Source: Amphiscolops sp. MND2022
Taxonomy: Eukaryota
Assembly: GCA_964187785.1 (NCBI GenBank)
Contig: OZ076419.1
Location: 27,094,001 to 27,158,000, forward strand
Direction: 5' to 3'
DNA length: 64,000 nucleotides
Below, piece by piece: positions 1,218 through 64,000 of the stretch (its first letter is position 1; every line of letters begins with the position of its first letter). The position numbers and the translations under genes were made by a program. Below the pieces are notes generated by a model. The model was not told the DNA's origin. It saw nothing but the letters and a program-made list of their open reading frames with translations, and searched no databases.

Positions 1218-3081
1218 CCGATCTATTCGATCTCCGATTTAAAAACTTCGGATTTGTTTTCGCTATGTCTGTAACTGGCGTTTTCTAATCGGGTTGACAC
1301 TTCTATTAGCTCCTTTTTGTGTTATTCTTTTGATCCTTTGGTTACAATGATGATGTCGTCTAACCACGCTGGGTGATTGTTTTCCAGCGTTTGGTCAATT
1401 TTCTCCTGAAAGATGGTCGGTATGTCCGCTAACCCGTAAAATGCCTTCAGGAACCGGTAATAACCGGTGAAATCACCGCCCGTTACGGCAAAGATGCATA
1501 GGTTTTGGGCTTCTCTGGATAATATCAACTAACCATATGCGTAGTCCAGGTCAAGTTTTGGGGTTCAAATTTCGTCTGCTGCACCATCCGCGATTTTTCT
1601 GGAAATTCTGGAGATTTATTCCTCCATGTTGGGCATTTGTGTTTTTCTTTTAATGGTGATTTTTTTGAGTTTTTGTGAATCCAGTGCAATTTTAACCGAC
1701 TTGTCCTTCCTTTGTTGTATCAACTTTGCATCTTCTTTTAATTGTATTTTTACTTCGAGTCCCTTCACGGTGTGGTTCTCGTTGAAAAGTTTTTTAAATC
1801 TTTTCTTTAGGAGAGTTATGTCCGGATCCTCTGTTACCTGATTTATCTGTGGACCAGTCTCACCGGTGTCCAGTGTTATTCCCAGTTTGTTCATCCAGTC
1901 CAAACTCAGTAGAGGGTTGGTTTTCTTCGTAGTTATCATTACTTCGAGGTCTTTTAGTTTTCCGTATAATTTTACTGATGCGGTTGTTTTTCCCTCGACT
2001 TTGAGCCGGTTGTCATTCACGTCTCTATATTCGGATCCGATTAGCATCAGTGGTGTTATTTTGTTGAACTGTGATTTTGGTATTAAAGTTACCTGTGAAC
2101 CACTGTCTATTATAAATTTGATTGAATGGCTGTTAACCAATGCGGTGAAGGTGAAGAATTCCGGACCGTTCTTTTTGTTTGGCGTGTCGAATGGACCTTT
2201 TGATTTACTGAATGGACTCTGTTTGGTGACCAGTCGTCCTCTTCCGCGCTGCTTGCCTCGTTATCTTGTACATGGTTCACTCTTTCGTTTGTTCTGCAAC
2301 ATTTTGCGTAATGTCCAATCTTTTCACATTTTGCACATTTCTTTCCCCTAGCCTGGCATTCGTGCTGTCTAGACCAGTTGGGTGCTCCGCATCTGTTACA
2401 GTCTAGTTGTTTGACTTTTGTCGGTTCTTTCGACAGTTCTTATGTACTCTTTGTCTTCCTTTTATTGAGGTATCTGATTTTCTTCTCTTCTTCTGTTTCC
2501 GGTGAGTCGTTCAATTTTTCATACATGTACTCATGTATTGCTTCGGTGATTGCCTCTATTGACATATCGCTTTATCTAATTTTCTTTTTGAGGTCATAGT
2601 CATCCGTCGCTTTCCCGATAACGGATAAGAATTTTGATGCTAGGAGTTCTGCTGCGGTTATTGTTTCGAATTCGCAGTTTTTCTCGGCTTCTGATATTCT
2701 TTTCCAGACATCCGCGGCGGACTCTTCGTCTTCCGTTTGAGGTCGAAGAAATTGGCCCTGCTGTCTTGAACATTTCGATCCGGTGTGAAGTGTCGAAACA
2801 ATGTGTATAATTTGTATAGCGGAAGTGAGCTTGATTCTCTCTCTCTCTCTAACCGTTCTGGTCATTTCCGTGATCGCATTTTGTCCGATTGCCCATAGGA
2901 ATATATCCTTTATCTCCATTTCTAATTGATCGCGGTATTGTGGCAGTATTTCTTTGTTTTTCGTCATTTTTGATCTAAGTCCTTGGTCATTTTTGTGTAT
3001 TGCACGAACTTCCGCCACCACATGTTGGCATTGGTATAGTCTTGTTTTTCCAATGTTGGAATGGTAAGTTTCTGTGTACAC
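1218..3081 (-). pseudogene. Degenerate gag-protease-partial RT of Gypsy element 1; RNase H and integrase deleted
   Basis: Gag-like ORF 2572-3081 and a Zn-knuckle region near 2330-2400. Protease motif IIDSGSQVTL (ORF 1616-2140). RT block YGLADIPTIFQEKID...AWLDDIIIVTKG (ORF 1322-1528), continuing past stops to about KSEIE*IG at 1218, then jumping into the low-complexity post-integrase tail. Confidence 0.88.
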
Positions 3082-3256
3082 ATCCGTTCATTGGTTCAGT
3101 TCAGCGTGTCGTTTGGTAGCGGTTGTTCGCCCGAGTGAGTTCCCGCCGACGTCCTGTTGGTGGCTCCGTTCCTTGGAGTGGTGTTTGTACTCTCGTCCGT
3201 TTTTGGAGTTTATGTGATGGTTCTTTAGTAACTCTGTGTTTACTCTGACTGCGCCA

Positions 3257-3475
3257 TGTAGTATCTCTTGAGAATACGTATAAGAGTATGTTGTTTAAAA
3301 TTCAACTATTCTGTAGCTCGTATCTTTTTCATTATCATCGAGTGATAAACTTCATCTGCACTTTTGTGGCAGGCAGGTACATAGCTATAAATTACATTAA
3401 TCTCAATAGTAGACAATAACAATAACAATAAGGCAGACTAATTAGTTTCTAGTTCGAGTTTGTCTGTCCTCTACA
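3257..3475 (-). repeat. 5' LTR of Gypsy element 1
   Basis: Direct repeat of 263-484; PBS immediately inside at 3256-3245. Confidence 0.92.
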
Positions 3476-3588
3476 GCGACATTTTTCGAAAGAAAAAAAT
3501 TCAAAAATTTCAAGTTTTTTTCCAAAATAAGATTTTGCACTTTTTGAGCCTTAGATATAGCGCCGACTTTAGACGTTCTGGTCTTTTT
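3476..3588 (+). mobile_element. 3' part of the HINE-like copy interrupted by Gypsy element 1
   Basis: Continues the family consensus after the TSD; 3' subterminal motif GCGCCGACT at 3560-3568. Confidence 0.75.
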
Positions 3589-4502
3589 GTGAAAAACTGT
3601 GAAATTGTAGTGCTGTTTCACATTAGTAGCGTGGCATTTCCAGCGTGAGTTTTGAGAAAACTCCGTGACAGAAATCCTGCAGTACATTTCTTTGTGGAGT
3701 AATAAAAACATAGCTGGTAGTGCAAATAGTTGCAAAGAAATTCTAGAGATTTTTTCTAGACTAGAAGTTGTTTTTTTCTCGAAACCATTTTTAGGACACC
3801 TACCAACACTACTAGAAAAAATCTAGAGGTTTGTGTGAAGCAACAAAAAACAAAATATTTCCAGGGCTTCATACTAAAGGGAATATGCAAAATCTTGGCA
3901 AGGGTTTCAAGACGTTTTGCGCTGTATCTGAAACTGAAGGAAAAAGTCTCCTTCACAGCTGCTTTAGGAATCGAGCAGCTCGGTCATGACTATGGCGTCC
4001 CATCAGAGATTTGACTTGTCCAATCAAAGGAAACATGTTCTATCAAACCGAGAGGCGATTAGAAAAGTCATTGTGTGACAAGAGAGTTCCAAATTGTTTT
4101 GGTCGAAAAGTAATCAGACAGGTTTTGTTGATTACGCTGTTGAATGATATTTACAGACTCTAGTTTCTATTACCAAGATGCATCATTCTTTGTCGACACA
4201 AAACGTAACTATTATAAGAACTTTTCGTTCTTTTTTCTCAATTTTCTTTTGTTATTTTTCATGTCACGGTATGGCAGTATGACATGTGCACTACGCTTAA
4301 ATATCTGACCTCACTTAACTTTCAATCTAACTTTTAAGAGCTTTCAACATGCTATAAGATGCTTTGCAACTTTGTGTGTGCTGGCGAAGGAACTAGCCCA
4401 TTTTGATATTCCTCATGTCATTGAATCTCAAGAGTTTTTTTGGGTCTCATGACGGTGTTCCAAGTGTTTCTCTTCTCCATAGAAAATTTTGAAAAACCTT
4501 TC

Positions 4503-4717
4503 TGAAGAGAAGATGCCATTCATATGGCTATTTAAGTTCGTCCAGTTCAAAGTACCTGCCACAGAAACACTCTTATCATAAAACATTCAGTGCCGGTGCT
4601 AACTGAGATACAGTTGATTGTGATAGCTACATTGAGTTACATTTTTAGTGTGTTAACTTACTGCTTTAAAGATCCCAATTCTTAATTCAACTTTCGTTTA
4701 CCTATTGGTCTTTTACA
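4503..4717 (+). repeat. 5' LTR of Gypsy element 2
   Basis: Direct repeat of 7804-8018; followed by the PBS. Confidence 0.93.
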
Positions 4718-4736
4718 TGGCGCAGTCAGCAATCTA

Positions 4737-7642
4737 ATGGACAATCAAACAGACCCGAATACTTCGGTACAAACGGCCCAATCGGCCACGAACCAAACGA
4801 TAATGAACCAGGCAACAGCAGACCGAATGGAGAAGAATAAATACAAAATTCCAATCCTATCGGATAGAGAAACCGACCTGACAAAAATAAACCCACGAAT
4901 GGGGTGGGAGCAAATCTCCGAGTACATACATCTTACGTACAATCGAAATCTAGACGAAATGATGAATCAAGGCACTGACCAAATGGACCCTCATACCGTG
5001 CACCACATCAAAGGAGATGTTATCTGGGCACTAGGCCTCAAAGCCAAACACGAAATCATGAGGGGCCAATGGGGCAGAGAACTGAAAGATGTAGACTTAC
5101 CACTTTATGTAGACTTGCTGAAAGATGTAGACTTACTTTATCCCTGCACGAAATGTTTTCCATAGCCGAGCCCAATTTTTTAACATCAAACAAGAAGATT
5201 GGATCCATCAAACATTGGATGAATATTGGAAAAGACTCGTCGACGTTGAAAGAAAATGCGAATTCAACAGAATCACACCAGAAGAAATTATTACGTACAA
5301 ATTCGCATCTACCATCAATGACAAAAAAGCTCGAGATAAATTCATAAAGGGGCCGCTGAAACTCCAAATGGTCCTTGAAACCATCGAACAGGACAACTAC
5401 AACCGCAAATACGGAGATAAAAAACCGAATAGAAAACACAGAAAACTCCCATCTGACAGTTCGTCAAGCGAAGAACAAGTTGCCCACACCCAACCAGCAC
5501 GAAAGCGCAGGATGACAGAAATTGGGAAGAAGAAGGTATCGAACCGCAATTGTCACTTCTGCGGCAAACCAAATTGGTCATTGGAACACATCTGCCCAGC
5601 ACGGCGAGCACAGTGCAACAACTGTAAGAAAATGGAACACTTCGCCAAAGTGTGCAAATCCAAGACCGTCAGCCGGATACAGAAAGAACCATCAACGGAT
5701 AGCAACCCCGAATCATGGCCAGAAGTTGATCATATCCAATCCGTCAACGGTATTAACCGAGTAGACTTTTACAAAGCAATACTATTAGTCCAGGGACAGC
5801 CAATAGAATTCAGTATCGACACTGGCTCTCCGGTAACGAAAATACCGCCGATAATTATGAAAATTAATCCATCAGAAATACACAAAACCACACAATGCTT
5901 TCAAGATGTAAACAAAAACCCAATAAAATTCAAAGGTGAAGCCACGGTAAAAGTGAAAACAGAAAAAAGCAAGGAAACTTTACCCATACTAATCACCAAA
6001 AACAAAAACACCCAACCTTTATTGGGACTGGACTGGTTGGACAAATTAGAAATTGGACTACAAGGAACAAGACGGGAACGTCCCAAGTCGGCGCCATATC
6101 TTAGGCTCGAAAATATTCAAGGAACAACTATTGGAAAAATTTGGAAAAATTTTTTTTTCAAAAAAAAATTTTTGATTTTTTTTTCGAAAAAAAGTATTTT
6201 CTAGGTCGCACAATGCCGAAAAACTCAAAAAGATGCCATTCAGGCTCATTCAACGTTTTCTACAAACCGAAAACTTCAAAAAAAATCAAGGGGGTACCCT
6301 TTGATAAATTTCGAAAATTTTCGAAAAAAGTAGCATAGTGCCGAAAAAAAACCCAATGGGGGGACCCTTTGGTCTCACCTGTACTTTTGGAAGCATTAAA
6401 AAATTTATGGTTTAGTGCGAGAATCGAACCCATGCTCTCCGGCTGGGTCGAAGATGGAAGATGAACAAATATGAAAGATGAACAAAAATTGTAAGAAAAG
6501 TGGGCCACTCAGAGTGAGATTGTCAACTGAAAAAAAAACAAAAAAAACTACTCACTGTAAGAGTCGGGCTTTTTTCCTTAAGGGAAAATGCGCCGACTAA
6601 AAAACAACACGAATATTATCCGACACATTGGAACCGCTGGAAGACGACAGAAGAATATCAACGAATACGAAGATCTATTCAAAAATAATCATACAATCAA
6701 AGATCTGACAATTGATATTCAACTGAAAAAAGACACCAAACCAGTTCAACAAAAGGGACGACCAGTGCCAATACACTTTCGAAAAACAGTCAAACACGAA
6801 CTGGATAAGCTGATTGAAAAAAGACACTTAGAAATGGCAGACTACATTGTCCTCAACGACTCGAAAAAAAGGGCAAGATCGGTAAGCCCGGAATTTAAAC
6901 ATTACCAATTTTTCGAAAAAAAAACAAACCGAATGCTTTGAAATGTAGATTCAAAACTACCAAAATGCTAACGGCGATAAAAGAGACTAAACATACCATA
7001 ACTACATATGAAGGGAAAACAATACACAAAAAACTAGCGTCAAAACCGATAAAATTTCAGTTTTCAAGAAAACCAGAAGAAAAACGGAGACCAACCAACA
7101 AATGCCGTAGATGTGGAAAAGTGTGCCAAGGAGAATTCTGCGATACACACAAAAGAGTGTATGGAATTCCAAAGGGCCAACAAGAACCGTGCAGCAGCCA
7201 CACCTTACCCATGATGCCGCAGAAACGATCTGCTTACGACGACATCTTTACAACTCAAACAGAGACGGACGTACAAGAGCCACAAGCCGTCACAACAACG
7301 ACACAACAGCATGAGGAACAAAGCGCTGCCGCAGAAGAGACCCAGCCAGAGGAAAATATCTCACCGGAAGTGAATACACCGTTGCCAACTACTCCGATCC
7401 AATGTAGTACCAGCCACGGCCCATGCTCGTCACAAAAAGACGAAGGTCAAACTACCCCAATCCGAACAACTGTCACCGCGGAAATACCGGCCGAAACCGT
7501 AAAGGCAAATAAAGAAAAAGGTAAAGCTGACATTAAAGAAATAAAACAAAAAGGTAACAAAGTAACATTCGAACAACCAAATGATCTTCGTAGATCAGAT
7601 AGGATAGGGGGGGCTAAACGGACTGAAAATTGGGTGGGATAG
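4737..7642 (+). pseudogene. Degenerate gag-pro-(RT stub)-tail of Gypsy element 2, interrupted by a HINE-like insertion at 6066-6604
   Basis: Gag ORFs from 4737 and 5215 with Zn knuckles CHFCGKPNWSLEHIC and CNNCKKMEHFAKVC. Protease SIDTGSPVT. RT N-terminus QQKGRPVPIH after the insertion, then a jump near 6840 to a low-complexity tail (ORF 6938-7642). No YxDD, RNase H or integrase present. Confidence 0.88.
6066..6604 (-). mobile_element. Full-length HINE/DINE-1-like non-autonomous element inserted in Gypsy element 2 pol
   Basis: Reverse complement of 11011-11530. On its own strand: T-run, AGTCGGCGC, a partial inverted copy GCCCGACT, then the body, GCGCCGACT, a GACG-ttcc-CGTC hairpin and TTGTT. 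Splits pol between LQG and NTNII at an AA/TT site with no clear TSD. Confidence 0.8.
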
Positions 7643-10205: not shown

Positions 10206-10750
10206 CTGGAAAAAATGCTCTTTTTTTCATTTTTTTATGTCACAATTTTCCGTTAATTTGTGTCAATTACTAACTAAATTGAACGGTAATCGGTCTACAA
10301 CTGGAATTTTTCACAAATTTGTTTTCATGAAGGAAAAAACATAATTCAAAATTAAAAGTCGCGAGGTACACATAGCTGACGAAAGGATTACTCTTAAGTT
10401 GGTTAGATAATTTGGCAAAATAGCTCCGAAAAATCAGTGTTCACGCTGAACATGTACAGCTTTAAACTTCATTCTACCGGAATTCAGATAGAAATTCATA
10501 GCAAATGTGGCTAGTTTTTTTCATGGAAGATATTTAGCTTCACCTCAGACAAATCAAAGACTACGACCTCCGATCGGTTTTAATGACTTAGCGATTTCAT
10601 CATATCCCATCTAAAACTTCAACCGAAATACTGCATAGATCATTCATAACATAACTTTATCAAACAGCGTGACACGAAAAGTAGCTCCTGAGTATGTACA
10701 TACACAAAAAAGAAATAGGTGATCTTAAATTTTGGCAAAATGTATTGTAC

Positions 10751-10878
10751 CTGCCGCCTGCTGGGTGCCTCCGAGTCCATAAACCCCTGGGAAGGGTAAG
10801 GTCACGTGGGGTGGAAGTTGCCAGAATTGTCTGTATGCCAGTTTCATCCGGGATGCGACTTGTTTCTTCCATTTAGTC
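10751..10878 (-). CDS. Nedx: Nedx-like exon 4 ((R)TKWKKQVASRMKLAYRQFW...QQAA), completing the homeodomain
   Basis: Acceptor ttttgcag|GACTAAATGGAAGAAACAA supplies the expected TKWKKQ in phase 2; donor GCAG|gtacaa. Confidence 0.92.
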
Positions 10879-12738: not shown

Positions 12739-12970
12739 CTTCGGTTCTGGAACCAAGTCTTGATCTGGGTCTCACTCAAACTGAGAGCCACGCTGAGTTC
12801 CAGTCTTTTGGACACACTCAAGTATTTATCTTTCTTGAATTCTTCTTCCAGTTTTTCCAGCTGCTTGGCCGAGTAGGCTTGTCTGGGCTTCCTCTCCACG
12901 CCTGGCTTCCTAGGTCGTCTGATCACACTGTTGACCCCGGCTGAGTTGACCCCTGAAGCTGGATTGACCC
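12739..12970 (-). CDS. Nedx: Nedx-like exon 3, homeodomain residues 1-53 (ERKPRQAYSAKQLEKLEEEFKKDKYLSVSKRLELSVALSLSETQIKTWFQNRR)
   Basis: Acceptor ttttttccag|G, donor CGAAG|gtgacc (phase 2). The KPRQAYS...DKYLSVSKR...KTWFQNRR signature matches my recollection of the Nedx / Drosophila Lms family (T47, Q50). Confidence 0.92.
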
Positions 12971-13448
12971 CTGGAAAAAAAATCGAACGTTATCATAATA
13001 TGTGTGATATATGCATAGTAATTTTTGCATGAAGGAAGAAACCTTTTTTGAACTGCTAGAGAAAGTGCGTCAATAGAATTTCTTCGTGTTCGGAAAAATG
13101 GTAAAAAAATTTGGTCCGAATCTTTAAACTTGACCTGAATTTGTAATTTCATAGGAATTCTTTTTTCCAACTAGTTTCTTGTACATTTTTCTGTACAGAT
13201 TTTATGTAATTTTTTTCTTTGTATAGAATGTTTATAAACTAGTCCCTTTTGTTTTTCCAAAAACGTTGAAACGAGGTTGAGAGAAAAAAGTTTCGTATTT
13301 TTGATACCAATATACTTTTTTGGGGATAAAAGCTGGTTTAAAAATTGTTTAATGTGCCAATATGGCATGCAAGTTGAAACAGTATAATTGAAAATAATCA
13401 TCTTTCTATTTCAAATAACTTTCTTCCGAACAGCACAACCTGACCTAC

Positions 13449-14204
13449 TGTAACGTCCGGCAGTCGGCGTTGCAGAAGTTTTTGAAAATTTCGATCAAAA
13501 ATTCGAAATGTGCGACATCAAACAAGCACATTCAAGATGGCCGACCCGGCAGGTACGAAAACCGCAGAGGAAGCAAAAATAAAGGCAAAACACCACCAGA
13601 GAAGACCTCACCCCACCACCCAGGAACGAGGATGCCCGAGATGTCGTCACCCAGAAGGCGAGAGAGTCAGGAATTCTGTCATCCGACAGCAAAAAGACAG
13701 GGTTTCGGCAGAAAAGTGCCAAATGAGACCATTGTGCCCAGAAGATGAGGAATGATGCCAGAGGCAGGAAGCCGATGATCGCCACCGAAATGTAACTGTA
13801 TACTTTATTGGGGCCTATCCCCACCTGTTTTGACTGTCTATAGCGTATTTGGATAATGTTTGACCTACTAGATCCTCATTTTAGTCCTTATTCACTCAAT
13901 ATAATGTATTTCAGTTAGACACCTTTTGGACCTCGGAAGTATGTAGGAGATGGCAGGAACGCGCTAAAAACCTTAGGACTTGTTTTTACAGGCTTGTGGG
14001 GCGTGTCCGGACTTTGAGAGTGCCGGCACGTCGCCTCGGAGCTCTAACTAGAGGAGCCTCCTTAGACGTTAGAAAAGTCCCCCATGGAGACCATTTTGGG
14101 ATCAAAAACTAGTGTTTAGGAGTGTAGTAAGACAACGGTCTCCTGTTTAAGCACCCTAGGCATTGTCCCTCTTCCTAGATGTGCGCCGCTAGCCGGACGT
14201 TACA
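13449..14204 (+). repeat. 5' LTR (756 bp) of the non-coding LTR element
   Basis: Direct repeat of 17824-18579. Confidence 0.95.
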
Positions 14205-17200
14205 TCTGGAATAGTTTTTATGGCGACCACAGAGGGATATTTTTCAAGGATAATTTTCCTTACCGCGTCCTGCGAGGAGCAACTCCTGCTTTCCGGCCCT
14301 GAAAGGTCCGGATCTAGGAGAAGCTTTTGGGAGAGTCCTAGATTGTTTTTATTGCTTTATTCTAGCCCTTTGGGCCTTGTATTAGTGTTTTTCCTGCGTT
14401 TCCTGCATGTTTCCGAGGTTCCCAGCCTGAAAAAGACAGTTTGAAACAGTGTACCCCCTTGTGCCTTATCTGTACTCATTAAAAAAGCTATTCCGGCTTA
14501 TCCGGAGCGTGTTTTAACGGGTTTTCCAGCTTCTTTTCAGCTAATTAGCAATGTACAGGGACTGCGAGGACGATTGGTGAAGACCCGAACTAGCTGAGTG
14601 TAGGGCTGCAGGTGCTTCACGTCATAGCCTCCTCCTCCCCACTTGATGCCAATTCACCGAAGACAGCTGGGTTATTTCGTTCCCCTTACGTTTTCTAGCC
14701 CCAAATTAGTATTCCCAGGCCTGTTATTGCATAAATTAACTGTGAATAATACCCACAGGGTATTTACATCAGTTATTTTAAGAACTTGAGCTCGAAAACG
14801 CCAAAAAAGACAGTAAAAACAGCTCAAATATCGAAATTTCCCGTTTTGAGAGCCAAAATTTTATAGAACTGTCTACGGCCTGAGGGAATACCTGAAAAAC
14901 GTTCTGTCGGACCTACCAGGTCGAGAACAAATAATTTTGTTGGGCTGTTTTTCTAGAAAACCTGAAAATTTCAGCAATTTTTGTTCAAAAATAGGCAAAA
15001 TTGGCCATTTTGACCAATTTTGACGAGGGCGAAGCCTTGGGTGTTTGCTCCCAAGCCTCTTGAAAGGCCCAAAATTTTTGTTGTTGTGCTTGGTAGTACG
15101 CAATACTACTACCAAGACGGTTTTTGAACATCCCCAATATAAATTGAAGTTTTAACATCACTTTTCTTTCATTAAAATAGACCTGAGTAGAGGACCCCAT
15201 AGACCTGAGAGCTATAACATCAAAAATAATAATTGAAAGAACCCCACTCCCCTGAATAAAGCAGTTACACCTTCCTACAGTACCGTTGAAACCACCGTTG
15301 ACCTCTGGGAACCGAAGAATAACAAGTTCCTAGGGAAAATAAGTGTTTTTCATAGGTGTTCCCAGAGTGTCCAAGGTGTAACCTAAAATCAATTTTGGGA
15401 GACCTTATTTGGAACCTGCCAGGTTTCGCTCGCCTATTTTCTGTTAGTAGAGAGTACTAGATTACTAACGCCGAAAACCGCGAGTGATTCCAACCAGTGG
15501 TTGTTGAGAAATAGCCCAAAACGTGCTATTTTTGCGACATTATCGGAACATTGAAATAGTGTTTCAAAGAAAGGTCGAAATCTCTCCTAGCAGGAGTAGC
15601 CCAAAACGAATTGCACCATCGTGTAGACCGCAAAAAGTTACGTTAGTGGTGTAATTTTCGTAGCGCTACTGTTACTAGTGATCGAGAAATCTTAGCCGCA
15701 GTTTTGCTCAAAAATGATCCGAAAATGTCGAAAAAATTGAATTTTAGTTGAGCATAGTGCAATACCTCGCAGGTACCCCAGCACCAAAATTCTTGCATTT
15801 TCGTGCACACGGCACTGGATCACGACGATTTGTGCAATTTGAGCAGCCGGGTACTAGCCAAAGCTGAGAAATCGACATTTTTGTGATTTTTGACCCGAAA
15901 AAGTGGTACCTCTGGTACATCAAGGTTTTGTCACTTCATATCGCCAGATATTGATCAAGGCACCTCGCCGCTCTGTTTTCCTCTTACGTGGGCAAAAGTT
16001 ACGCTCGCATGCAAAATTTCAGGTGGCTGGGAAGCCTAGAAGGCGAGTCTGACCACTTTTTGTGAATTTCACGACATAGTCAAATTTTCAGTGAACATTG
16101 TTAAGTGGCCGTGACACCCACAGGGTCAATTTTGACGCAATCGGAGGTTCATTCCCCACGATTCAACCAGTGTATTAGACGGTGTGAAATTTTCAAGTCG
16201 CTAGCAGCGCTACAAGTGATTTTCACCTTCCCCGGAGGTGCATGTTGACGAGAAAATTGTTGATGTTGGGCATTTTTGCAAAAAATCACATAGTTTTTCT
16301 CAGTGTACATGCCAGTGAGGGCCAAGACGACCCAATTAGCATACCGAGCGCCCTCAGGACGTCTTCTTGAATCACTTTGAATAGTGCTAAGCTGACCCTA
16401 AGATCTCGGGTCTCTGAGAAAACCGATCTATGAGACATGGAGATGAAAAACCGAAAATGGAAATTCACCTCCCGGCTGCTATCAAAGTCACTTGAGTGCA
16501 ATCTGTTCATTCAGATTACGCATACTCAGTGCCCCACGGGCCCTACGGGTGCTGGAGCGCGTTTATAGGCACTTTTAGAAGTTTAGACTTTGTACGCAGT
16601 GCGTCTCAAAACAGAACAACAAGTACACTGATGACTGCCATAGTGGAAAAAGAACGCTTTTTCTAATCGTACTACGATCGTAAGGCAAAAAACCACTTCA
16701 AACTCAGTGTCTCTCCTCCTACTCACCCCCAAGGTCTACCCGTAGTCCCTAGTTACATTTTTGTTATCACTTATGCTCTCCAGAAACATGGCAACATGAG
16801 TGACAAGCGGACATTTCAGACAATCTAACATCTGTAGCCAAGCAGACTTCTCAAATAATCAGTGTTCGTTGCTCAATTCATGCCTATGGCGTACTTTGGT
16901 GCTCGGTACCACAGTTGCGTGAACCATGTCGATGTGAAAACACCGGACCAGAGATTGGCCCGGGGAGTACCCATACTCTCCCGAGAGAAGTCAACACCAA
17001 GCATGATGAAACACCTAGAGCTTCGAAGCTCTGAGAACTGCTTGGCCAGCGGCCGTGCTTTTAGAACCCGAATGATTGTTCTGGAACTTGTTTTTAATGC
17101 TGAAGACTGTTTTCATGATCTATCATGCCTGATTTTTGACTTTTATTGGTTCTGCTCTATCATCGTTAGTGACATTGTCCCCTCTTGAGAAGTAGTTTGT

Positions 17201-17823
17201 TTCCATCTCTTGCATATACACTGGTGCTTGTACTGCCTAGACAATAACTTTAACTGAGCGTACACTGTTGACACAATAGATTGAATAGTTCCTCATTTTT
17301 GGTGATATTTTTGATTTTTGAGGCCTATTTCACCATTAGTGCTAGTTATTGTGCAGTTTCTGTTGGCCATGAACTTTGCAAGACCACAGCTGTTACTTTT
17401 ATTTTTCGCTTTTCAAGTGCTATCGTGCATTTTATAAAACCTAACCTATCAGGCGGACCCCAGGTCAGTGCCAAACCTATTGTGATGAGTGCTTTTTATG
17501 CAGATGCAATAAGGTGCTAGAAATTTTGAAATCTTGGTGCGAAATTAAAAGTTTGAATTTGTTTTGAATATAAGGCTAAGTGTCTAAAGTTGCTAATATT
17601 TTTCCAGTGCAAGAACCCGTTGTTGGTGTGGAATCCAAGGAAACCTGCTAGGCTGGCAAAAACTCATGTTTTTGGGCAATAACGTGTTTTTGGGCAACGA
17701 CTTCCATTTAGATTCCTGAAGTACCATGTTGCAACAGTATCACTGGATCACTGGATGGTGGCAACCAAGATGTGAACGTCCTCTCTCGTTTGTCGAGGAC
17801 GACAAACTACGGCCCGGGGAGGA

Positions 17824-18579
17824 TGTAACGTCCGGCAGTCGGCGTTGCAGAAGTTTTTGAAAATTTCGATCAAAAATTCGAAATGTGCGACATCAAACAA
17901 GCACATTCAAGATGGCCGACCCGGCAGGTACGAAAACCGCAGAGGAAGCAAAAATAAAGGCAAAACACCACCAGAGAAGACCTCACCCCACCACCCAGGA
18001 ACGAGGATGCCCGAGATGTCGTCACCCAGAAGGCGAGAGAGTCAGGAATTCTGTCATCCGACAGCAAAAAGACAGGGTTTCGGCAGAAAAGTGCCAAATG
18101 AGACCATTGTGCCCAGAAGATGAGGAATGATGCCAGAGGCAGGAAGCCGATGATCGCCACCGAAATGTAACTGTATACTTTATTGGGGCCTATCCCCACC
18201 TGTTTTGACTGTCTATAGCGTATTTGGATAATGTTTGACCTACTAGATCCTCATTTTAGTCCTTATTCACTCAATATAATGTATTTCAGTTAGACACCTT
18301 TTGGACCTCGGAAGTATGTAGGAGATGGCAGGAACGCGCTAAAAACCTTAGGACTTGTTTTTACAGGCTTGTGGGGCGTGTCCGGACTTTGAGAGTGCCG
18401 GCACGTCGCCTCGGAGCTCTAACTAGAGGAGCCTCCTTAGACGTTAGAAAAGTCCCCCATGGAGACCATTTTGGGATCAAAAACTAGTGTTTAGGAGTGT
18501 AGTAAGACAACGGTCTCCTGTTTAAGCACCCTAGGCATTGTCCCTCTTCCTAGATGTGCGCCGCTAGCCGGACGTTACA
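17824..18579 (+). repeat. 3' LTR (756 bp) of the non-coding LTR element
   Basis: Direct repeat of 13449-14204; preceded by the PPT. Confidence 0.95.
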
Positions 18580-18582
18580 TAC

Positions 18583-18741
18583 CTGATAGAGGACTGGGAA
18601 TAGGGGGACAGGTCACGGGTGTCATTGACCCCGGGGTCACCAAAGGGCTGTTTGGGTCAGAGGAGGTCATAAGGCCAGCTGCCGCTGCTGCTGTGGTTGA
18701 CCCCGGAGTTCCATATTGGAGTATGTCAGATCCTGTGAAAC
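18583..18741 (-). CDS. Nedx: Nedx-like exon 2 (GFTGSDILQYGTPGSTTAAAAAGLM...PIPSPLS)
   Basis: Acceptor cccttgttttccag|G, 159 nt open (phase 1-1), donor TCAG|gtatgt. Keeps frame between exons 1 and 3. Confidence 0.85.
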
Positions 18742-21489
18742 CTGGAAAACAAGGGAAAAGTTGTAAAAGCAGAAAAAAATCTTCTATAAAGACCTACCAG
18801 TGTGTTAGGTCACTTGAAATTTTTTACCTGTTTTGAAAATCGACACTGTTTTTTTCCGGGCCAAATATGTGGGCAAATAATTATTGGAGAGGTAGGTCCT
18901 ACCTAAATAAGTCCAAATTCCGCTCTGGGTTTTTGGCATTGCGGATTTTAATCAATCATTTAATTGTATTTCGTTACCGAACTTGTTTCTTTTGAAAAAA
19001 TCAACAGAACTCGTCAAGAATGAATTTCAATTCCATTAAAAAATAGTTTTCAAGTCGAAAAATCGAATGTTTTTGAAAAAAAACAACAAAATGAAAATCT
19101 ATCTTTTTTCTTGTTTTTCCGACCCACTTTTTTGCAGACACTACCCGCTGTTAAACTCACTTCATTTTACGATTGCGCAATTCTATTGATTGCGCGCTTT
19201 CTCAATTCCTGAGGTTTTCCCCCTTTACAGAGGCTAAAATGTTTGACAAAACAGTAAAAAAATTGTTTAGAGCTACAGTCTCCAGCAGTGAGCTAAATAT
19301 TTGCATTGAGATGTTGAACTTCTGTTAAAAGTTGAAAGACTTGTTCCGTCTGATATTGATTTGGAGTACATGTAACGTTTATTAAAAATTTAAATATTAT
19401 TAATGCAAAGATGTCTGGGAATGTTGAGGTGTAAATTCGGGACCAGAGCCTGAATTAACGAGAAAATCATGGAAGATTAGAAAAAAGGAAAGATTTTTTG
19501 AAAGCATGAACGAAATCCAATTTTCATTGATCACAATTTTAAGTTTATTAATGATTACAAATGTCAGTGTATGATGAAATTAAGGTATAACCTCGAAAAA
19601 CAGCAAGAACGTTTACCAATTTTCATTTTTCATGAAAAGCTAAAACTTAAACTTTCGAACAAATGGAAACAATTTGATCATAAAGTTAATAGAACCATGA
19701 TTACATAAAAAACTACAAAAAACTAAAAAAATGATTGGCGTATATTATAATCTTAGTTTAGAGATCATTCAACTCTGAAATTCTCAAAACTTAGGATTAC
19801 GAAAAACTTTTTGGGTGAAACAAAATGGGATGCAACTGTCGGAACTTTTCTGTGTTTGAGACTTAATGCTTTTCACCTTAACAGCTGCTACGTTTCATAT
19901 AAAATGATCTTTTATGTTTAATACATTATTTTCCCCACTACAAAAGCGCTATAATATATATTTTTTGAATTATATGAAAACTATTTTTTTCAGAATACCA
20001 CGATTTCTAGAATTTCTAAAACATTTAATTTATTTCACGTTGCTCCGTTTTTTTGCATCAAGTTCTGCAACCGAACTTAATTCAAGAGATATTGAATGAA
20101 AGACAAGTGAAAGTCACAATTCAGAACAAGTTAGGTGAAAAGTTGGCCAAGTATCAATTACACAGATGATCTTTGCAAGAGAAAATTTGCAACACTAATG
20201 AAATTCCAGCTTCCGATCATTGTTAAGTTTAAAAACAGAAAATTCGATTTCAGAAAATTTGAAGGAGTTAGACACAGCAAATAAGACAAGAACCATGAAG
20301 GTCGAAACAGACACCGTATGATTTCTGCGATTGTATGAAACCCGCTTAAGAACATGTAAGCAATGAGATCATTACACGGCTACATAGCTTAACAAATCGG
20401 GACTCAAACGAATCAAAATCTCTGATATATGTTCGCACTTTTTGGAGAAAACGCCCGCTGAGTGGGCACCGGGGAGGATTTTAGCACTTCAGGTTTTGTT
20501 CCAAAAAAACTTCCATTATCTCTACGAAACATATGCTGAAGCTTCATTAAAACTCTGTGAATATTCATACTCACGAAAAAATTTTAAAACAGTACAAAAA
20601 CAGCATTACAATTTTTTTTTCAAAATATTAAAACGTTTAGAAATTCAGGTTTTCATTGCGAAAGATTTAAGATTTGAGATCACTCTTCATCAGTTGATCC
20701 CTCTTCCCTTCTTGTCCGGTAACCCAACTTGTCATATGAAATTTTTGTTCAGAGAAACTTAAACTCAAATATCGATTTTGTGGAAAACTACCATTCAGTG
20801 AATTTAGTGGCCGATAAAGTTCAATTCAAAATCAATTCAGTTACAGAGCTTTTATTCAGTAGAAAATGTATTGTCCTTTTTGCCGTGGCCTTTGATTTTT
20901 CACCTGTCAGAAAATGTAGAGACTAAAATATATTTTTTTGCCATTACTGAATCGAAATTGGAGTTAAAGTGTCATTAGATATCAGCTGTGTAATCTTGGC
21001 GAGTCTTTGAGAGTGACTTTCGACTCCGTTTGATGAATGTTTGATCGACTATTTTACCATAATTTACCTCTAATACAGCATTAATTTAATCAATTAAAGG
21101 TGAAAGTTTTTGTAATTTTTGATTAGATTTTTTTTCGAAGAATGTCCTCAGTGCAATTTTCAACCTAGAACCTTGAATTTATTCTTCTTTATATTATTTA
21201 GTTTTCGAATTATGAGGGAAAAATGAAACTATTAGAAATTCTAGTTTTTTTTCTCCAGACTCTCAAACCTGTTGGTGGTTTCAGATTGTCGTGGAGTGGG
21301 TCTGAATGAATCTAGCACCACATTACAAGGCTAGAAAGTATTAAAGACTTCCCATTTGGAGTTTTCGGCAATTGGCGACTTTTTTGGAATTTTGTTTTGT
21401 TTTACCAAAGGGCCCTTTTGATTTTCTGTTGTTTCTAGTTAAAGAAAGGCCTCTTTAAAAATCCCAAAACCATTTTGATAGTGATTTTT

Positions 21490-21543
21490 TTGCGCTTTTT
21501 GAGCCTTAAGCGGGGCGCCGACTTGGGTTGTTCCCGACTTGTT
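21490..21543 (+). mobile_element. HINE-like 3'-end fragment, 25 nt inside Nedx intron 1
   Basis: ttttgagccttaagcggggcgccgacttgggttgttcccgacttgtt matches the family 3' end. Confidence 0.6.
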
Positions 21544-21568
21544 TACCATTGAGCCAGCGTTTTCTCAC

Positions 21569-22202
21569 CTGGTGCTGCAGTCGTGATCAAACTCCTCTGT
21601 GTCATCAAGTCCAGACTGTTTACTGGCGAATATCCGGAACTCACTGGACTGCTGTTTGCTATGACGTCACTCGGTGGAAACTGTAATCCAGCTACTGTTT
21701 CGTTCACACCTGGGTAAAACTGGTTCATGCTGGCAGCTGCAGCCAGACTTCCAAAATGAGCCAAACTTACCGGGGGACATACTGGATCAGCTACAGAGAA
21801 GCTATTTTGGAACAAAAGTGATGGAATTTGTTGATTTTTGGATGATATTTTGTGAGCCAGGCTATTAATTTCTCGGCTGGATTCTTTTTCTTCGAATTGT
21901 TGAACACTGTTATTCGCAGTGGAACCAGAATTAGTTATATTTTGTTGCTGGTCGGTGATAAATTTTTGTAAAAATAATTTTTCCTTTTTTTCCATGTTTC
22001 GCATGGAGAAAGGAACAGGGGATGCAGAAATTTTAGGGACCTTTGAAGAGGTTGTAAAAATAGGGTTTTCGGAGGAAAGAGATTTTTCCGGAGTTAAACT
22101 TTCTGGCTGGGATTCCGATCCAGTTTGAATTGTTAGTCGTTGGTCCAGGGAAGTTAGATTGGACGTTATTAAATTATCGATGGAAAAACTGGATTTTTTC
22201 AT
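21569..22202 (-). CDS. Nedx: Nedx/Lms-like homeobox gene, coding exon 1 (MKKSSFSIDNLI...TAAP); contains the eh1 motif
   Basis: Lies within ORF 21543-22292. ATG at 22202; FSIDNLI eh1-type motif; donor CCAG|gtgaga at 21568 (phase 1). The symbol is based on the homeodomain in exons 3-4. Confidence 0.85.
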
Positions 22203-62303: not shown

Positions 62304-64000
62304 TTAAAAACGCTCATTAAAAACTGGCGCCAAGCGTACTACAGGTCGTTTGAAGGTACCATCATGAGTTTTGATGAGCACTGATCTCACTACACCATCT
62401 TTTGCTGGATATATTTCTTTGATTCGTGCCATCTTGTAATGAGATCTTTTCACATTGTTATCAACCAACCACACCAAGTCTCCAACTTGAACATTGGCTT
62501 CTGATTTGTTCCACCTGGTTCTGACATTGTTTTGTGGGAGATATTCACTAACCCACCTTTTCCAAATCATATCAGCATAGGCCTGGCAGGATCGGAACAT
62601 TTTCCGATGATTGGAATAAATTTGAGCATTGGGAATAAAGGGTATACAAACATTCGCTCGTCCCAAAATAAAATGATTGGGCGTAAGTGCCTTTAAGTCT
62701 GAAGGATCATCGCTTGCTGGGGTAATTGGACGCGCATTTAATGTTTGTTCCACTAAGCACATAGTTGTCAATAAAGCTTCATCTGTAAGAGATCGATTAC
62801 CCAATATAGCCACCATTGCCTTTTTGCAACTTCTAACTAATCTCTCCCATACACCACCAAAATGGGGTGCACCAGGAGGTTTAAACTTCCATAAAATGTG
62901 CTTCTGAGCAAGTTCTGACGTTATTTGATCTTGATTCCATGAGTTGATGTACTCCTTCAACTCTCTTGCAGATCCCACGAAGTTAATACCATTATCACTT
63001 AAAATGGTTGTTGGCTTGCCACGTCTAGCAATAAACCTCTTTATAGCTACCAAGCAGGAGTCTGTATCAAGGCTTCGGACTACCTCGATGTGTACTGCTT
63101 TGGTAAATAAACATGTAAATAAACAACACCAACGTTTCATGGATCTTCGCAACAGTTTAACTTCAAACGGCCCAAAATAAACTATACCAACATGAGTAAA
63201 AGGGTGAGACTGATAATCGAGTCTCTCTGCAGGTAAATCGGCCATGAGAGGAAGGTTTATCTGCGCACGTAATTTGCGACAGAATACACAACTACTTTTG
63301 ATGCTCCTCAAAGCATTTCGTAATCCCAAAATCCAAAACTTCTGTTGGTTTACGCTTCTAATGTACTCTACTCCTTCATGGTTGTGTTCGAGATGTAAAT
63401 CACGTAACAAAACTTTAACAAAATCGTGTTTCGTGGACAGGAGAATTGGATGGCGTTGTTCAAAGCTCAAATTTGCATGTTTAATACGTCCTCCTACTCT
63501 TATTATGCCAGTATCGTCAAAAAATTGAGAAAATTTTGCCAAATCCCCAACTTTGTTTGTCTTACCGAACGTTTGCTTTTCTTCATGAACTACTGGAAAA
63601 GTTTCTCGTTGAATTAGCTTGAAAACCCTTTCTTCCGCCCGTTTCAATTCACCGGGAAGTAGAATTTCGGATTGACTTCCAAACTTCACACGTAGACAAA
63701 ATGCTATAACACGCACACATTTGGAAAAGCTACTAAATCTGCTCCAATCAACTATTGGCTCCTGAGTCATGCTTGTGTTCGCAATTACTGCAACTGCAGC
63801 ATTTTCATCAGGCACCAAGTTAACTGGTTGCAGAGACAAAGGCCAATCGTCAGGGTGGTCTTTGAGCCAAATTGGTCCAGAAAAGCAATCGCTTTCGGTC
63901 AATTTCTGTATAGTAATTCCACGTGATCCAATATCTGATGGATTCAATTCACCTTTAACGTGTTTCCATTTTTCAATTGTGGAATTTTCCAAGATCTCAG
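62304..64000 (-). CDS. BEL/Pao retrotransposon Pol C-terminus (RNase H end, integrase, C-terminal domain); 5' part outside the window
   Basis: NPSDIGSRG, HPILL, HHCC-type H...H...CVFC, integrase core VGIVYFGPF / SDNG.NF / GGVWERLV, LTPNHFILG and C-terminal GDLVWL...RPVVRLAPV, all typical of BEL/Pao. Confidence 0.93.
   Translation of the reverse strand, partial: EILENSTIEKWKHVKGELNPSDIGSRGITIQKLTESDCFSGPIWLKDHPDDWPLSLQPVNLVPDENAAVAVIANTSMTQEPIVDWSRFSSFSKCVRVIAFCLRVKFGSQSEILLPGELKRAEERVFKLIQRETFPVVHEEKQTFGKTNKVGDLAKFSQFFDDTGIIRVGGRIKHANLSFEQRHPILLSTKHDFVKVLLRDLHLEHNHEGVEYIRSVNQQKFWILGLRNALRSIKSSCVFCRKLRAQINLPLMADLPAERLDYQSHPFTHVGIVYFGPFEVKLLRRSMKRWCCLFTCLFTKAVHIEVVRSLDTDSCLVAIKRFIARRGKPTTILSDNGINFVGSARELKEYINSWNQDQITSELAQKHILWKFKPPGAPHFGGVWERLVRSCKKAMVAILGNRSLTDEALLTTMCLVEQTLNARPITPASDDPSDLKALTPNHFILGRANVCIPFIPNAQIYSNHRKMFRSCQAYADMIWKRWVSEYLPQNNVRTRWNKSEANVQVGDLVWLVDNNVKRSHYKMARIKEIYPAKDGVVRSVLIKTHDGTFKRPVVRLAPVFNERF

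Follow-up and report, generated by a model that had tools for sequence, protein, structure and literature searches.

The question raised by this locus is whether a retroelement can land inside the six-base core of a splice donor in a developmental gene and leave that donor usable. Repeat finding in the window, which is the whole 64-kb stretch of DNA that was analysed, places a 5,131-bp long terminal repeat (LTR) element at 13449-18579, inside intron 2 of a homeobox gene encoded on the minus strand, and the point of insertion lies between intron positions +3 and +4. The coding parts of the gene and the pieces of the interrupted intron are arranged as follows, in the direction of the gene:

21569-22202, minus strand: coding part of exon 1, with the Met codon at 22202, an EH1-like motif (FSIDNLI) and the donor CAG/GTGAGA
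18742-21568, minus strand: intron 1, 2,827 nt, containing a conserved block at 19295-19417
18583-18741, minus strand: exon 2, 159 nt, phase 1 in and out, encoding FTGSD...IPSPLS
18577-18582, minus strand: donor hexamer GTATGT, composed of GTA (host duplication copy, 18580-18582) and TGT (LTR terminus, 18577-18579)
13446-13448, no strand assigned: second copy of the target duplication; together with the next GGT, the original GTAGGT stays behind ACA
12971-13445, minus strand: remainder of the original intron 2, with the polypyrimidine tract and the acceptor TTTTTTTTCCAG intact
12739-12970, minus strand: exon 3, homeodomain N-terminal arm and helices up to WFQNR (Pfam PF00046, E 1.5e-18)
10725-10878, minus strand: coding part of exon 4, from R-TKWKKQ... 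through the stop codon

On the gene strand, exon 2 ends at 18583 (CAG), one copy of the duplicated GTA occupies 18582-18580, and the LTR terminus starts at 18579. The junction reads ...TCTATCAG/GTA/TGTAACGTCCGG... or, with a longer piece of the exon, ...CCTCTATCAG followed by GTA and then TGTAACGTCCGG..., and at the far end of the element the same strand reads ...CCGGACGTTACA/GTA/GGTCAGG. The target duplication is 3 bp long (TAC on the plus strand, GTA on the gene strand) and stands on both flanks. Removal of the element together with one duplication copy reconstructs the empty site CAG/GTAGGT, in an intron of 478 nt compared with 5,612 nt at present. The sequence-only reading had claimed that exon 2 is followed by GTA and then directly by the LTR, that the donor has been rebuilt as GTATGT from an empty-site GTAGGT, and that an insertion of 5.1 kb expanded the intron from about 480 to 5612 nt; the first is confirmed by the junction sequence, the second by both element junctions, and the third by the lengths given above.

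The element itself comprises these parts:

13449-14204, plus strand: 5' LTR, 756 bp, identical to the 3' LTR
14205-14224, plus strand: putative primer-binding-site position, TCTGGAATAG..., kept in all copies
14205-17823, plus strand: internal region, 3,619 bp, whose longest ORF has 108 aa and carries no retroelement domain
17816-17823, plus strand: purine tract GGGGAGGA adjoining the 3' LTR, present in every full copy
17824-18579, plus strand: 3' LTR, 756 bp, with TGT...ACA ends and 21-nt terminal inverted repeats

Structurally, this is an LTR retrotransposon in having long direct repeats with TG...CA ends and a target-site duplication, while the copy lacks gag and pol coding capacity. Comparison of 10 of its ORFs with Pfam returned no retroelement domain, only a single, sub-threshold and irrelevant match, and, given the shortness of the longest internal ORF, the copy is considered non-autonomous. 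All copies have TGG 2 nt after the 5' LTR and GGGGAGGA before the 3' LTR. The positions of GGGGAGGA and TCTGGAATAG make the plus strand the sense strand of the element, which is therefore antisense to the gene; the orientation claimed earlier is thus upheld by GGGGAGGA at 17824 and TGG 2 nt past 14204.

The LTR recurs widely across the 1.07-Gb assembly, in which the window lies on contig C11, with matches at 96-99% identity, and most of these matches form pairs that are 4.36-4.72 kb apart. Target duplications of 3 bp, varied in sequence, also flank ten further full copies and a solo LTR, so the GTA duplication is normal behaviour for this family. The two LTRs are identical in 5 of 11 pairs and 98.8-99.9% identical in the others, and the family is, judged from these copies, abundant and active very recently. 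In the copy studied here, the LTRs (756 bp each) show 0 differences and are thus 100% identical, which indicates a very young insertion, on which selection would have had little time to act. Its age would have a 95% upper bound of ~3/(2 x 756 x rate), or roughly 0.2-2 million years, under assumed rates of 1e-8 to 1e-9 per site per year.

The 13-nt LTR terminus TGTAACGTCMGGC has 2,744 occurrences in the genome and is common to several LTR families; same-strand pairs of it that are ~18.4 kb apart recur, for example at C1:13598901/13617295 and C1:28529015/28547415. Other retroelements are represented in the window as well. A 562-aa ORF at 62304-63992 on the minus strand, with an integrase zinc-binding domain, an integrase core domain and DUF5641 (E 1.2e-24), is by its domain content part of another retroelement that runs past the window end, and several ORFs at 1616-6204, with weak matches to retroviral-type aspartyl proteases (E ~1e-3 to 1e-4) and zinc-knuckle-like motifs, are by the same token probably what is left of other LTR elements that lie downstream of the gene.

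The reading that best fits this arrangement is that of a recent, non-autonomous LTR insertion into the donor, with exon 2 to exon 3 splicing most likely retained, and we consider it probable. On this account, the element integrated very recently between +3 and +4 of intron 2, antisense to the NK-like homeobox gene, and was probably mobilised by large gypsy-type elements with shared TGTAAC termini. Integration duplicated GTA, with the exon-side copy keeping donor positions +1 to +3, and the LTR terminus TGT, which all TG...CA elements present in either orientation, restored the G at +5 and the T at +6, leaving a G to T change at +4 as the sole alteration of the donor. The acceptor and the polypyrimidine tract are unaffected, as is the remaining intron sequence of 475 nt, or 478 nt if the downstream duplication copy is counted, and exon 2 would most likely still be spliced to exon 3 through GTATGT over a 5.6-kb intron, perhaps less efficiently. 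Rescue of the donor comes from the TG...CA ends of the LTR combined with the 3-bp duplication. The rescue is not specific to this copy, since the +5 G comes back with every TG...CA element whose duplication covers +1 to +3, and it is the 3-bp length of the duplication that made an insertion so close to the exon possible.

How strong the rebuilt donor is can be expressed as the nearest-neighbour energy computed for its duplex with the 5' end of U1, which is canonical in the U1 genes of this genome. The values are:

perfect consensus donor: -14.0 kcal/mol
empty site GTAGGT: -11.8 kcal/mol
intron 1 donor: -11.1 kcal/mol
present donor GTATGT: -9.9 kcal/mol
intron 3 donor: -6.6 kcal/mol
far-end ACA/GTAGGT (second duplication copy): -5.3 kcal/mol, a poor donor

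With GT at +1/+2, CAG/GTATGT fits the consensus at 8 of 9 core positions, and modelled insertions shifted to the neighbouring positions gave -10.0 and -7.2 kcal/mol. The present donor is thus predicted to be slightly weaker than its predecessor, yet well within the range that the same gene uses. It had been stated that both donors fit U1 well and that the LTR terminus preserves splicing; the former agrees with the energies of -11.8 and -9.9 kcal/mol, whereas "preserves" is a slight overstatement in view of a pairing that is ~2 kcal/mol weaker. Separately, exon 2 contains an internal GTGACC (18641 region, ...TTG/GTGACC...) that is the same sequence as the intron 3 donor (AAG/GTGACC), and it could possibly act as a cryptic donor if the authentic one were weakened.

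The main competitor, which is possible but clearly the less likely of the two, is that the insertion acts as a hypomorphic or loss-of-function allele, with a reduced output of mRNA encoding the homeodomain, whether by a weakened donor, sequestration of the donor in an inverted repeat, premature polyadenylation or pseudo-exons. As to the first of these routes, the loss of 1.9 kcal/mol in U1 pairing is in its favour, but the donor is still stronger than the one that the gene uses for intron 3. Sequestration is conceivable, as the terminal inverted repeats of the LTRs (21-22 nt, 86% complementary; 18559-18580 with 17823-17844, and 13449-13469 with 14184-14204) are computed to allow a duplex of -41.8 kcal/mol that would cover the donor from +1 to ~+24; the partner strand, however, lies 714 nt downstream, and U1 could bind co-transcriptionally before it exists. 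Premature polyadenylation would be favoured by six AATAAA hexamers that the element carries on the gene strand, the first of them at 18184, ~400 nt beyond the donor, with five more after it. For pseudo-exons, donor-like sites on the same strand of the element at 18199, 17986 and 16726 (-9.8 to -12.0 kcal/mol) are as strong as the real donor; against them, just two of the acceptor-like sites in the antisense element have a strong pyrimidine tract. In mammals, furthermore, a strong depletion of full-length LTR elements extends over kilobases around exons (Zhang, Romanish & Mager 2011, PMC3088655), although the antisense orientation seen here is the one that is usually tolerated.

An allele of this kind would persist only if it were very young, recessive or located in a dispensable gene, and the identical LTRs agree with the first of these. 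On the other side stands the state of the allele in the animal that was sequenced. In the reads examined over 12800-18790, which come from the only public runs, four in number and none recorded as RNA, of a single sample and study and thus from one specimen, no contig joins 13448 to 18583 in any run, bearing in mind that contigs can drop a minor allele, and a search of the assembly with both flanks for an empty-site haplotig matched only the window. Because the branch at the insertion point that a heterozygote would produce is absent, the specimen looks homozygous or hemizygous for the insertion, and the animal apparently lives with two copies of it or with one hemizygous copy. That the insertion is tolerated, as had been proposed, is therefore indicated indirectly, by an empty allele not being visible in one specimen, and a single specimen is no reliable guide to the population frequency of the insertion.

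A bolder version of the probable reading, that of a recent insertion with splicing retained, holds that the TGT of the LTR is used in vivo as +4 to +6 in a viable homozygote and, in addition, that outward transcription from the 3' LTR runs antisense over exon 2. We regard this combination as improbable. If it were true, the locus would hold a natural cis-antisense or splicing-efficiency allele of a homeobox gene, and a very young one. More generally, TGT-ended elements with 3-bp duplications could enter GTR donors and leave them functional, so that donor cores would be permissive targets in this lineage.

It is very unlikely that exon 2 is not real, or that the gene is a decaying pseudogene in which the state of a donor is irrelevant. 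Joined together, the four exons encode an intact protein of 392 aa that carries an EH1 motif near the N-terminus and a homeodomain, and the three introns (2,827, 5,612 and 1,860 nt) are all of the GT-AG type. The closest homeodomains, from Owenia, Patiria, Diadema, Limulus, a spider and crabs, are 79-87% identical over the aligned stretch of the homeodomain exon, and the proteins that contain them are unnamed or inconsistently named. By its homeodomain, its N-terminal EH1 motif and its bilaterian orthologues, the gene is classed as an ANTP-class, NK-like homeobox gene; a second homeobox was found neither in the 64-kb window nor in ten 10-kb samples within ±100 kb.

Exon 2 itself joins exons 1 and 3 in frame. 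A related species has an orthologue of the gene, on contig L034 and on its sister contig L039, in which exon 1 is 60% identical and the exon 2 peptide is conserved as FTG.D..YGTPGS...TPGS...IPSP.S. In both contigs, introns 1 and 3 are present, while the coding sequence passes from this peptide to the homeodomain exon uninterrupted by an intron, from which it follows that exon 2 is genuine coding sequence, as the sequence-only reading had supposed. The fused counterparts of exons 2 and 3 lie at L034:15559-15930 and L039:10067-10438, against 18741-18583 plus 12970-12739 in the window.

As the relative has no intron 2, a recent gain of this intron was considered, and it was rejected on the evidence of three distant phyla. 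According to exact exon models, the orthologues in Owenia (annelid), Patiria (sea star) and Oedothorax (spider) have an intron just upstream of the homeodomain arm that is in phase 1, like intron 2, and sits at an about equivalent position, which makes intron 2 probably ancient and also speaks against a pseudogene. The better reading is that the related species lost intron 2 precisely, and nothing essential need be housed in it. Intron 1 differs from its counterpart in most of its length: a 124-nt non-coding block (19295-19417 in the window, L034:14436-14558) is 77% identical, while the remaining intron does not align, and the block may be a regulatory element.

An assembly artefact, with the LTR element misplaced or collapsed into the intron, is scarcely credible, since, highly repeated though the family is (2,744 terminus matches), a perfect and family-typical 3-bp duplication stands on both flanks and, in k-mer contigs from all four runs of the one specimen, the unique sequence on either flank continues for 26-27 nt into the LTR. 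The insertion is also present in L035, a separate long-read contig that is 100% identical over 20.7 kb; it probably comes from the same specimen and is for that reason not independent evidence.

Whether LTR ends meet donors more often than expected can be judged across the genome. AGGTR directly abuts the LTR terminus at 4 sites. With a 5-mer frequency of ~0.0017 and 2,744 termini, of which between half and all face host DNA, ~2.4-4.7 such sites are expected, and the three sites other than the present one belong to different LTR families and have no adjoining ORF. The genome-wide test of LTR ends at donors that had been suggested thus shows no excess, 4 being seen where roughly 2-5 are expected, and there is no sign that LTR termini prefer donors.

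Since this is one insertion, with no genome-wide pattern behind it, its value is anecdotal. Should carriers splice normally, it would be a clean natural case of a retroelement that is harmless within a six-base donor core, with its TG end re-supplying the +5 G. The insertion would also be a ready-made allele for studying tolerance at +4, a twelve-fold expansion of an intron and the antisense effects of an LTR on a developmental transcription factor.

Several known systems resemble the locus in part. LTR elements usually duplicate 4-6 bp of their target, and a search of the literature for 3-bp duplications in such elements found nothing relevant. The family is similar to the non-autonomous LARD and TRIM elements in having two LTRs, a purine tract, a conserved sequence at the primer-binding position and no gag or pol, as well as many uniform copies of 5.1-5.5 kb, and it departs from them in its 3-bp target duplication. 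Classical alleles caused by intronic retroelements include copia in white-apricot of Drosophila and IAP/ETn insertions in mouse, for which RNA phenotypes have been measured. The present case shares with them the intronic position and the possible effects on polyadenylation, cryptic splicing and antisense transcription, and differs in that the site lies within the donor itself, which is unusual, and that it is known from DNA sequence alone.

Mammalian elements that sit within 20 bp of an exon are found preferentially on its donor side, and the antisense orientation strongly predominates among LTR elements and LINEs close to exons; the donor core there takes up only ~6 bp, and antisense read-through was not found to be a general problem (PMC3088655). 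Like the endogenous retroviral insertions of that study, the element described here is a full-length LTR element, antisense and on the donor side of its intron. Unlike them, it lies within the 6-nt core (+3/+4) rather than next to it, its own terminal bases complete the donor, and its host is an invertebrate-type animal and not a mammal.

Introners provide the other parallel, as they take their splice sites from duplicated target sequence and from the ends of the transposon; they create new introns in exons, and most of them appear to spread by DNA transposition (Gozashti et al. 2022, PMC9860276). Here too, the splice site is part target duplication and part transposon end, but the element is an LTR element and its family shows no sign of a general association with splice sites. 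Classification of the element as an Introner was rejected because the intron pre-exists, as the phase-1 intron of the annelid, sea star and spider orthologues attests. Set beside these systems, the insertion is a particular instance of known behaviour.
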